Below are positions 2,800-16,890 of a DNA stretch of 64,000 bases, piece by piece; position 1 is the first letter of the stretch; each line of letters starts with the position of its first letter. The notes under the pieces are model-generated. The model was not told the DNA's origin and searched no databases. It saw only the letters and a program-made list of their open reading frames with translations. Origin of the DNA: Podarcis filfolensis. Taxonomy: Eukaryota. The translations under genes were made by a program, and so were the position numbers. The stretch lies in assembly GCA_964270895.1 (NCBI GenBank), contig OZ185435.1; one strand, 5' to 3'.

Positions 2800-3155
2800 G
2801 GGACGCGGGTGGCACTGTGGGTTAAACCACAGAGCCTAGGACTTGCCGATCAGAAGGTCGGCGGTTCGAATCCCCGCGACGGGGTGAGCTCCCGTTGCTC
2901 AGTCCCTGCTCCTGCCAACCTAGCAGTTCGAAAGCATGTCAAAGTGCAAGTAGATAAATAGGTACCACTCCGGCGGGAAGGTAAACGGCGTTTCCGTGTG
3001 CTTCTCTGGTTCGCCAGAAGCGGCTTAGTCATGCTGGCCACATGACCCGGAAGCTGTATGCCAGCTCCCTCGGCCAATAAAGCGAGATGAGCGCCGCAAC
3101 CCCAGAGTCAGTCACGACTGGACCTAATGATCAGGGGTCCCTTTACTTTTTATTT
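2800..3155 (+). mobile_element. Sauria SINE, full length
   Basis: GGGACGCGGGTGGC..GGTTCGAATCC tRNA-like head, Sauria body, CCCTTTAC-type tail; flanking direct repeat TAATACTAAG (2787-2796, 3156-3165). Confidence 0.92.
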
Positions 3156-13665: not shown

Positions 13666-13921
13666 CTGAGGACAGGGAGGGAAAAAACCCCACAAATCAT
13701 GTTGGTGCTACGTGCATCATTTTTTCCTCCCAAGAGATTGAAAAGCTAGCTATCATTCTGATCTTTTTAAAAGACTGAGTTATGCCCAGAAATCTTTTCA
13801 GCATTTTATGTGTAAAAAGTACTGCAGAAAAGGATCAGCCCAATCATGCACTTTGCCTAACACAGATCAGTAGTCTCTAGCATACCGCTAATGGAATAAA
13901 TTGTTACTTTTGGAAGCCTAC

Positions 13922-14045
13922 CTTTTACAAAAAGATTTGCTTGAGTTCTGAAATCCTTTGCAGTCAGTTTGACTTCTCCAGCATCTGTTAGTTTCACATC
14001 TCTTAGAACAAGGGTGTGAACTCTGCCTTCAGCACGGGGCACGAT
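13922..14045 (-). CDS. TTN: Titin Ig exon (second half, ~I96)
   Basis: IVPRAEGRVHTLVLRDVKL...LFVK; 124 nt, phase 0-1. Confidence 0.94.
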
Positions 14046-14968
14046 CTTTCAAAAAAGGAACGTTCAGGAGAATAGATTTGGTAAGAAAACATGTTGCGAC
14101 CTTATATCAAACATTTGTGTTAGCACATGTCTGTCTAAATGGGCTGGTAAACAAAGACTCCCGGTTATACACCCATGTACTTCTGGGCATGCATTGGGGC
14201 CTCTCTGATTTCTTGTTGCAATTTCAGCTCTTTGTACTGCATCAGCCGCCAAGCCCCAAAGGCCTCTAGAGTTTTGTGGGAATCGGCAGACTGAATCCAC
14301 CAGCTGATTGCTGGAACTGTAAACTTCTTCAAAGGGTTGATATAATCCAAATCAATCAAAAAGGAGAACTACAGTACGTGTATAAGAAGCTTTTCATCAT
14401 AGCTCCCCTGTCCAGCTGGGAAGAAGTCAGGAGAGACCTGGTTCTGCATGGATTATAGTCCCTTACTGGACTGGGGTAGGAGTGCCCTAAACACCATTGT
14501 TTGTGTTATCATAGGCCCATTTAAACTGATGTAGATGGGTTAATCAGAAGCAAAACATAAAATCTTGCTAACTATTAATATGAAAGTTGAAATAAAAGTT
14601 GAAATATTTATGATGCATCTAATAATGCTTCACCATTAAAATACTTTTCATGGGAACAGTAAGGATTAATCTATCCATTTAGTTAAATCTCGCTATGCTA
14701 GTTTAAATTTAATGTTTTGATTAGGCTGAATTGGCTATGGTAATTTCAAACTTGCACTAACTAGGCCTTATATTAGCAGGTATAGGTCTGTTTTCCTTTG
14801 CAAATATTCTCTGCATAAGCCTATCATTAACAGACACTCTAACGACTTAAACAGAGGATCTAAAAAAGCATGCACCAAATAATATTTCACTGAATGCAAC
14901 TTCTGCATGTGATTACTTATACTACTATATGGCTTGCTGCTAAAACATTTTAAATATTGAATGAACTG

Positions 14969-15129
14969 CATTCCAGGCTGTTCACATCTCAGCGCTAACA
15001 GCACACTTGATGAAGGGTTAAAAATAGCTGGTGAGAAATGCTCTGCGAGCAGATCTACCGAGAAAGTTATCTGGAAGCCTGCTCAAATGCCTGAAATGGA
15101 ATTTCAATCTCCTTAATCCCCTTATATGC
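14969..15129. promoter_or_regulatory. Candidate striated-muscle enhancer (TEAD, NKX2-5, MEF2, GATA, near-CArG)
   Basis: CATTCCA 14969-14975; CACTTGA 15004-15010; TTAAAAATAG 15018-15027; TTATCT 15067-15072; CCTTATATGC 15120-15129. Motif matches only. Confidence 0.5.
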
Positions 15130-15346
15130 AGAACTGGATGCCAGCTCTACATTCAGAGAAGGGAAAGAATCAGGAGATGCAAACATTCATAAACTTCCCC
15201 ACTAATATCAAAATATTACATATCCCTTTATGTTAGCACTGATACAAAACCTCCCCAACCCCTTTCACCTCTCACTTGGAAACTTTTATCTTCCACCATG
15301 TGGAAGGAACTGATTTTTCTGAATGATATTTTAGAATAGCGCCTTA

Positions 15347-15436
15347 CAGTGCAATCCTATGGATCTCTACTCAGAAGCAAGCCCCACTGAGCTCAGTGGG
15401 GCTTACTTCCAGGTAAGTATGTATAGGATTGCACTG
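15347..15436. mobile_element. About 90-bp palindromic interspersed repeat (MITE-like)
   Basis: 14-bp inverted ends CAGTGCAATCCTAT; related degenerate copies near 28023-28110, 32380-32460, 53507-53598, 55075-55120. Confidence 0.7.
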
Positions 15437-15530
15437 TCGGTCTCACAAAAGGGAGGGGTGGGAGAGAAAGAGGGAAAGAAATAGGGTTTGACACGGAAAA
15501 AGGGGAGAAGAGAAAGAATGTCTTCTGTAC

Positions 15531-15673
15531 CTTGTCACTGGGCTCCAATTTCTGTCCTTTCAAGAACCAGTCCACCACAATTCCCTCATAGGAGAGTTCG
15601 CATTCAAAGTTTGCCGTTTCACCAGCTGTTACAGTTACATCCTTCAGAGGCCTCAGCAGGCCAATTACACGTG
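15531..15673 (-). CDS. TTN: Titin Ig exon (first half, ~I96; inferred orthologue of human exon 240)
   Basis: PRVIGLLRPLKDVTVTAGETA...EPSDK; 143 nt, phase 1-0. Confidence 0.95.
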
Positions 15674-16160
15674 CTTGACGGGACGAAGAAAACATCTTCA
15701 GATTAGCCACCTGCACCTTTTACTAACTGCCATAGTGCCTTTCCCCAAGAGAGAGGGAGTATGATGTACAGAGGCTATTTAAATTCCCTGGCTAGATCTG
15801 GGCCCTTGGGGTTTTCAGGGGGAGGGTTGGTCACTAGAGATTCCCTATTTGCGGAGCCTGTTCCTTTTAAATGAAAAGATCAGCAAGAAAGCTACATTGC
15901 ATCTGTCTCCTTTGCCAAGCCCTGCATGCCTCTTGCTAGATAAGGCATGCGCCTTCCAAAATAGCAAGGTCTACAATTGGATAGAGAGACAAGTGGTCAC
16001 CAACTGTGTAGGGTGTTCCTGTCCATCAAGCTACTGGCACTTTCCACAAATGTCAGCATGGTGTTATCTCTCAGATCTTATACCCCAAATGCCAAGCACA
16101 GCAGAGAGTCCGTTTGTAATATTTTAGATTTCGTAACAACTCATTATGCTACCTTGCCAA
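15674..16160 (-). promoter_or_regulatory. Candidate Cronos internal promoter / alternative 5' end
   Basis: Intron position matches the known Cronos start by exon counting; in-frame ATG at 15695; TTTAAATA at 15776-15783; GATA motifs at 15938 and 16064; E-boxes at 15990, 16001, 16047. Confidence 0.45.
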
Positions 16161-16256
16161 TCATCCTGGAATAAGGAGGGGCGATTCCAGTGGTCTAACA
16201 ACCTGTTCTTATTAACTAATTGAAAATCTTTATGTAATACCTATCCCACGATCTAA

Positions 16257-16257
<1 letters not shown>

Positions 16258-16295
<38 letters not shown>
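16258..16295. repeat. (CTAA)n microsatellite
   Basis: Direct reading. Confidence 0.95.
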
Positions 16296-16530
16296 ATTAA
16301 AAGTATCAGAATTAACTTATAAAAAGCTTTTATAAAGAAAGAATAAGTGACACAACTATATCAAATAACTACTCCTCAACTTAAGCTCACCCGACTGTCT
16401 CTCCCTCTCATTTACTGTTCCATTAACAACAGATCACATGCCCCATTCTGACTCCCAACTTGTTTGAGTTTAGCTCAGTTACTGATGTAAAAGACAAGTG
16501 ATCTTACAGATACACTTGCAAGACACTTAC

Positions 16531-16657
16531 GTTTTACTCGAAGATTGGCAGATGATTTGGCATTGGCTGCTTGGAAGTCTACGCTACCGGCCTGGTCCAA
16601 GCGCACGTTGTAGAGTGTAAGACAGTGCCTTTTGCCTTCCTCCTTAATTTCACAGTC
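16531..16657 (-). CDS. TTN: Titin Ig exon (second half, ~I95)
   Basis: DCEIKEEGKRHCLTLYNVRLDQ...LRVK; 127 nt, phase 0-1. Confidence 0.94.
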
Positions 16658-16890
16658 CTTCCAAGAGCAAACAAATGCAAAGGTTTGTACAACGCTTAAT
16701 AGCTTTCACTTCCTTTTATCAGGTCCATATTTCTGGTATTTGGATTTTCAAAATGGTAGCAACCTTTTATTCCCCTTTGGGGACAAAACATTGTACTGGC
16801 TGCAGCTGTTTTGCAACCATGATTCTCAACATCCTGCCTCGGAGTACAAATACCAGAACAACACATTCGCTGGCATGTACATTGACAATA

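Follow-up and report, generated by a model that had tools for sequence, protein, structure and literature searches.

Cronos in other vertebrates and the titin setting of the lizard locus

The closest described systems are the Cronos units of the zebrafish, mouse, and human titin genes. The Cronos transcript is an unspliced 5' extension of an exon (PMC4720518). In zebrafish ttna the start site lies 110 nt upstream of exon e116, inside the intron, with a methionine 7 residues upstream of the exon; this initiator was probed by morpholino, and the function of the isoform in zebrafish was studied by RACE, morpholino, and mutants (PMC4720518). In mouse (exon e223) and human (exon e240) the start sites are 257 and 256 nt upstream in the intron, and the methionine is 12 residues upstream (PMC4720518). 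Mouse e223 and zebrafish ttna e116 were equated with human e240 by Zou et al. 2015 (PMC4720518). In the mouse, fast muscle and heart are rich in Cronos, and the protein is undetectable in soleus or diaphragm (Swist et al. 2020, PMC7478974). A 2024 study of human cardiomyocytes found that the level of Cronos does not depend on the intron-1 enhancer of TTN (PMC11827849), which fits a self-contained regulatory unit. Our literature search, with subscription journals outside its coverage, returned no paper linking Cronos with reptiles or birds, and no description of a Cronos upstream open reading frame (uORF) or of promoter motifs.

We analyzed a window of 64,000 nucleotides of lizard DNA (Podarcis filfolensis), by which we mean the whole stretch at its full length. 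It carries titin on the minus strand: PEVK exons are at the high coordinates, the distal tandem Ig domains follow, and the first Fn3 domains of the I/A junction come last; the exons of I96-I105 and of the first Fn3 within it appear intact. The Ig domains were counted from I84, which is placed by the exon that joins the end of the PEVK to it. On this count the I27-like domain (LYGVEVFVGETARFEVEISEPDVH...) is I91, as expected, and Ig I96 is encoded jointly by exons 15673-15531 and 14045-13922 (minus strand). We consider that the intron sequence upstream of this first exon is best explained, with a probability of about 0.8, as the predicted lizard orthologue of the internal promoter and the translation start of titin Cronos. 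The exons that surround it and the published oligonucleotides that we placed on them are the following.

16531-16657, minus strand: exon upstream, equivalent to zebrafish e115 and coding for the second half of Ig I95, used in full-length titin only (gRNA-e115 at 19/20; joint 16531|15673)
15531-15673, minus strand: first half of Ig I96, orthologue of zebrafish ttna e116, mouse e223, and human e240 (oligonucleotide mapping, spliced contigs, domain count)
13922-14045, minus strand: exon that follows, coding for the second half of Ig I96 (sequence; contigs with the joint 15531|14045)
16657-16638: zebrafish gRNA-e115, 19/20, encoding CEIKEE
15605-15586: zebrafish gRNA-e116, 16/20, encoding CELSYE
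15676-15657: mouse e223 primer, 17/20, encoding PRVIGL
13956-13937: mouse e224 primer, 17/20

The exon begins at 15673, just after the AG of the acceptor (15675-15674); from there the minus strand reads C|CA CGT GTA and encodes PRVIGLL. The borders 16531|15673 and 15531|14045 are backed by spliced contigs of a related species. A preliminary description of this DNA had reached 15531-15673 as the exon-240 orthologue by counting exons. We tested the orthology separately from any counting, by mapping on the window the zebrafish and mouse oligonucleotides of supplementary file 1B of PMC4720518. The zebrafish gRNAs e114-e116 and the mouse e223 and e224 primers are collinear on exons 18052-17849, 16657-16531, 15673-15531, and 14045-13922. 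Since the published oligonucleotides map there, exon 15673-15531 is the orthologue of e116 and e223, and hence of human e240; the counting was correct and is now independently backed. An RNA contig of a relative differs from the window at 7 of the 143 positions of this exon and at none of the 127 and 124 positions of the neighboring exons, which could be chance, a mix of alleles, or faster change in this exon.

Conserved non-coding sequence around the exon

The mechanical ORF 15695-15396, used as the query of a word search, gave 115 short ORFs from vertebrate genomic contigs that cross the same acceptor. From these we drew loci of squamate type (L001-L003), of other sauropsid type (L004-L006), of mouse (L007), and of a cyprinid (L008). 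The labels of L001-L006 were inferred from similarity, and the four squamate-type sequences discussed below are the window and L001-L003. L007 was identified as mouse by the exact presence of a mouse-specific primer, and the cyprinid locus carries the zebrafish Cronos primer (22/22). An amphibian-type group (P0079) consists of ORF translations only and owes its label to the RLIGLL signature that it has in common with a Staurois parvus protein.

The roughly 380 nt of intron that precede the exon (16052-15674) match the exon itself in conservation across the four squamate-type sequences, the three sauropsid-type ones, mouse, and the cyprinid. In an 8-way alignment, the identity of this proximal intron to the seven other sequences is 0.7-0.93, level with the exon, and it drops above 16075. 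When 6.5 kb of the window (19000-12500) were compared with each locus by blastn, the matches were the exons and just two non-coding blocks, 16052-15674 and 15138-14949. The core promoter matches mouse with 70% identity over 177 nt (E 9e-16). Compared with shuffled sequences, the non-coding local alignment has z scores of 112 (sauropsid-type), 54 (mouse), and 16 (cyprinid), and conservation is absent from the distal half of the same intron (shuffle z <=2.4). This unconserved distal part contains a (TTAG)n microsatellite at 16249-16305. The preliminary description had proposed aligning this intron with human TTN intron 239 and the zebrafish ttna equivalent; the sequence is conserved in the alignment with mouse and the cyprinid, and the mapped mouse start falls in the same intron. 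It is because of this conservation that the finding exceeds chance, the motifs alone being weak. All matches of an Rfam scan of 14700-16700 are far below the gathering scores, so that no known RNA gene accounts for the conservation. The plus strand has mechanical ORFs with TTG starts only, none of them credible. A scan for promoters and terminators of bacterial type, a method inapplicable to a vertebrate gene, found nothing. The conserved core promoter and its blocks are given here, the blocks being common to fish, lizard, and mouse.

15910-16052, minus strand: conserved core promoter (alignments, block list, blastn, shuffle z)
16028-16019, minus strand: TGATGGACAG, PBX/MEIS-like (TGATTGACAG in fish; TGAT(G/T)GACAG)
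15995-15990, minus strand: CACTTG E-box
15980-15976, minus strand: CCAAT
15967-15955, minus strand: TTGCTATTTTGGA, CArG/MEF2-like
15948-15936, minus strand: ATGCCTTATCTAG, GATA/TATA-like, some 30 nt ahead of the start site (in fish, CCATATATAG)
minus strand: TTGGCA promoter block
15898-15909, minus strand: GAGACAGATGCA, homologue of the mouse Cronos start site, including the E-box CAGATG (match of mouse primer mm_altprom_f)

The names PBX/MEIS, NF-Y, SRF/MEF2, GATA/TBP, and bHLH that can be put on these blocks denote resemblances to consensus sequences.

The start site itself was located with the mouse start-site primer mm_altprom_f, which matches 15909-15886 at 20 of its 24 bases, the first 12 being identical; its next best match on either strand of the window is 17/24. 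The same primer has an exact match at L007:2781; from there to the beginning of the exon at 3038 is 257 nt, the RACE distance given in PMC4720518. L007 is thereby shown to be mouse, and the primer to begin, at its 5' end, with the RACE start site. The mouse start site thus has its lizard homologue at 15909, 236 nt upstream of the exon, and the predicted lizard start lies nearby. The start-site block is among the best-conserved blocks. Hence, the earlier placement of a promoter within 15674-16160 agrees with the position of the homologue of the mouse RACE start.

The likeness extends to both kinds of described system. Mouse and human use the same intron and exon, and have the start-site block GAGACAGATGCA, the upstream blocks, and an upstream ATG (uATG) in Kozak context. 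In zebrafish, TGAT(T/G)GACAG, CCAAT, TTATTTT, and the TATA-like box are collinear with those of the lizard. There are also differences. At the position of the lizard's GATA-type TTATCT there is a true TATATA in the fish and TTATGT in the mouse. The zebrafish start is 110 nt upstream of the exon, whereas for the lizard homologue of the mammalian start the distance is 236 nt; compared with mammals, the lizard has a leader shorter by 21 nt, because non-squamates carry a 22-nt insertion.

Direct reading of the sequence finds all the features listed in the preliminary description on the minus strand where it had placed them. The GATA cores are at 15943-15938 and 16068-16064, the E-boxes at 15995-15990 (CACTTG), 16006-16001 (CAGTTG), and 16052-16047 (CATTTG), and CTATTTT at 15964-15958. 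All of these GATA sites and E-boxes exist, but conservation of the GATA site at 16064 and of the E-box at 16047 is limited to some squamate-type sequences. The E-boxes number 7, whereas pieces of equal length from the window have 2.8 +/- 1.7, and 3% of these pieces reach 7; GATA sites are not enriched relative to such pieces, and 15674-16160 has no strict MEF2 site. Since the E-boxes alone are mildly enriched, we dropped motif enrichment as an argument. The sequence TTTAAATAG (15783-15775), put forward earlier as TATA/MEF2-like, is present, but the homologous start site stands about 126 nt upstream of it. Because of this position, TTTAAATAG is probably leader and not a TATA box, and it is fully conserved in squamate-type sequences only. 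A better candidate for a TATA-like element would be CCTTATCTAG at about -30, where the fish has CCATATATAG.

The second conserved non-coding block lies beyond the exon.

14949-15138, minus strand: module of conserved non-coding sequence in the following intron (alignment; blastn with every amniote locus)

From lizard to mouse this module has an invariant CTATTTTTAA (a perfect MEF2 consensus), AGATAAC, and AAGTG, and the sauropsid-type sequences also have GGAATG. Its blastn match to mouse has an E-value of 2.5e-10, so that the mouse resembles the lizard in this downstream MEF2/GATA/AAGTG module as well. From its sequence, the module is probably a companion enhancer of muscle-like type for the Cronos promoter, a link to Cronos that we infer. 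An interspersed repeat occupies 15315-15516 of the intron. The raw-read RNA found on it consists of partial fits running into unrelated sequence, and therefore comes from copies elsewhere and not from titin.

The predicted start codon, its extension, and the upstream reading frame

Between the homologue of the start site and the exon we distinguish the following features.

15674-15909, minus strand: predicted Cronos 5' leader with N-terminal extension, contiguous with the exon and conserved throughout (mouse/zebrafish architecture)
15698-15733, minus strand: upstream ORF MAVSKRCRWLI-stop, 11 codons, with A at -3 and G at +4
15706-15702, minus strand: branch point CTAAT, shared, along with the polypyrimidine tract, with the splicing of full-length titin
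15674-15695, minus strand: Cronos-specific coding extension, MFSSSRQ and the first base of the straddling Ala codon (sequence; conservation)

The ATG at 15695-15693 is in frame with the exon and gives MFSSSRQ-A-RVIGLL, in a frame that is open back to 15719. The preliminary description had pointed to this codon, and it stands 7 codons and 1 nt from the exon, as does the zebrafish Cronos initiator, which likewise lies in the intron next to e116. The zebrafish N-terminus, MSSPESK, and the predicted lizard one, MFSSSRQ, are both rich in Ser. All four squamate-type sequences have an ATG at -22 nt followed by an open frame; the other sauropsid-type sequences have the ATG at -22 or -19 nt, and the cyprinid has it at -22. 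Gaps within the extension are of 3 nt or multiples of 3. An in-frame ATG with an open frame precedes 13% of random AG sites, and 1% have it at exactly -7 codons.

Over the wider set of vertebrate ORFs, the nearest in-frame methionine is 5-7 residues upstream in 67 of the 115 and 12 residues upstream in 31, although ORF callers begin at a start codon by construction, which biases these hits towards a Met start. As a partial control for this bias, about three quarters of the 21 ORFs that extend further keep a Met at 5-7 residues. The group of 31 is of mammal type, with MS(N/D)P(K/E)LFPSSRKA. The Met 5-7 codons upstream is found in shark, teleost, amphibian-type, and sauropsid-type sequences, with mammals at -12, and an elephant-shark UniRef model (P0095) begins at this Met with MFSPTSKA and continues by splicing into the next exon. 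Mammals start at the Met 12 residues upstream (mouse MSNTRHFVSSRKA), in contrast to the predicted -7 of the lizard. The codon corresponding to the mammalian -12 is GTG in the lizard (15710-15708), and the mammalian -7 position holds Leu or Phe. The simplest reading of these sequences would be an ancestral Met at -7 that shifted to -12 in mammals.

Several further ORFs bear on the same positions. The sauropsid-type sequences have GTG at the place of the mammalian -12 ATG, and mammals are without the -7 ATG (P0010, P0022, P0032). The mammal-type ORF P0010 (MSDPEMFSSSRKA) has both the -12 and the -7 Met. Fish-type ORFs with ARSVGL... or ARSIGV... cross the same acceptor and have Val, Ile, or no Met at -7 (P0093, P0101, P0105, P0106, P0109, P0110, and P0114). 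These may belong to a titin paralogue without a Cronos start.

The extension is rich in Ser, Pro, and Phe in every lineage because it is a translated polypyrimidine tract. Its overlap with this tract and the branch point explains part of the conservation of the last 40 nt, with the exception of the ATG and the open frame.

The uORF ends just before the main start codon: in the lizard its stop is 2 nt before the ATG at 15695. Its own ATG at 15733 is invariant in 8 amniote sequences, and a uORF of 5-13 codons is found at the homologous place in 9 of 9 species, the cyprinid included, so that zebrafish and lizard are also alike in having a short uORF. Across these nine, from cyprinid to mouse, the uORF keeps its ATG, which stands in a strong Kozak context. 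A start at 15909 would leave three upstream ATGs in the leader, two within 12 nt of the cap and the one at 15733. On this sequence evidence, a role of the uORF in translational control is plausible.

Transcripts, alternative explanations, and significance

A search of sequencing runs gave none registered as muscle RNA from this species, and none registered as RNA that contains the stretch. Four sequencing runs of unrecorded tissue and stage were compared with 13800-16800: two probable RNA assemblies of a relative and two raw-read RNA runs. Each assembly has one spliced titin contig, joining 16657-16531, 15673-15531, and 14045-13922, at depths of 37 and 30. The leader has zero depth over 15719-16526 in both of these probable RNA assemblies, in contigs that drop rare forms. 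Other intron pieces of depth around 3 were assembled in the same two runs. The two raw-read runs have almost no titin, one read spanning 16531|15673. Hence, of the step in coverage and intron-derived reads upstream of 15673 that had been anticipated, the assemblies of this relative have the canonical splice only, and leader transcripts were probably below about one tenth of full-length titin in the sampled assemblies. This negative is weak, since tissue and stage are unrecorded and mouse Cronos is not detectable as protein in soleus or diaphragm (PMC7478974).

The stretch is almost certainly, judging from homology, the lizard orthologue of the Cronos internal promoter, leader, and start codon. 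That this promoter is active in lizards is likely, because the ATG and the frame are under purifying selection in the squamate-type sequences. The main interpretation is supported by homology rather than by expression, and the finding is real but expected. Under it, RNA polymerase II would initiate inside the intron near 15909 in muscle cells, driven by the core promoter 16052-15910 and probably aided by the MEF2/GATA/NKX-type module 15138-14949. As there would be no upstream donor, the acceptor at 15674/15673 would go unused in the Cronos transcript, and about 236 nt of intron would in consequence become a leader contiguous with exon 15673-15531. Ribosomes would reach the uORF 15733-15698 and then initiate at the ATG at 15695. 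The product would consist of MFSSSRQA, a complete Ig I96, I97-I105, and the portions of titin that lie in the A-band and the M-band, without the Z-disc and spring regions.

The alternative that survives best is that the block serves as an enhancer of the main titin promoter, or controls the splicing of exon 15673-15531, and that squamates have no Cronos. Typical muscle-enhancer motifs and a GCATG in the block are compatible with such functions, the last 40 nt are needed for splicing regardless, and the two assemblies that contain titin have no coverage of the leader. However, neither function requires the ATG to stand at a constant distance, the frame to be open, or gaps to come in multiples of 3, and yet all this is kept in 4 of 4 squamate-type sequences; the homologue of the mapped mouse start is, moreover, among the best-conserved blocks. 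We regard this explanation as unlikely.

Much less probable still is a separate first exon, suggested in the preliminary description, that would run from ACC-ATG at 16059 (MLTFVESA) to a GT donor at 16034 and be spliced to exon 15673. The ATG and the GT exist and the phase fits, but the ATG is found in three squamate-type sequences only and is missing from L002, the other sauropsid-type sequences, mouse, and fish. We rejected this exon since it is unconserved beyond these three sequences, lies upstream of the core promoter, and has no 16035-15673 joint in the contigs. Finally, a chance cluster of motifs with a chance ATG in an ordinary intron, which motif counts near background except for the E-boxes and the share of random AG sites with an in-frame ATG (13%) might suggest, is refuted by z scores of 16-54 to fish and mouse in an intron that is otherwise unconserved, and by the specific match of the mouse start-site primer, so that its probability is negligible.

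With an orthologous Cronos promoter as the preferred explanation, the squamate-, sauropsid-, shark-, and amphibian-type sequences indicate that the isoform would date to early jawed vertebrates. A broader and more tentative proposal, which we hold to be possible and somewhat short of an even chance, is that the Cronos unit is an ancient module of jawed vertebrates. It would comprise a core promoter with blocks in fixed order (PBX/MEIS-like, CCAAT, A/T-rich box, TATA/GATA-like box, start-site E-box), a downstream MEF2/GATA/NKX-type enhancer, and a uORF that gates translation and whose start codon is kept from teleosts to mammals. Its Met, ancestrally at -7 as in shark, teleosts, and amphibian-type and sauropsid-type sequences, would have moved to -12 in mammals.

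Cronos is already known as a system explicitly described as conserved, and the footprint, the uORF, the shift of the Met, and the downstream module are modest new detail. Truncations of titin past the point that Cronos marks cause the severest cardiomyopathy, and its experimental mapping has been confined to zebrafish, mouse, and human. The phylogenetic footprint, with its blocks, uORF, and downstream MEF2/GATA module, could guide work on the regulation of Cronos. For the annotation of this lizard genome, the result provides a predicted alternative first exon and N-terminus for TTN.
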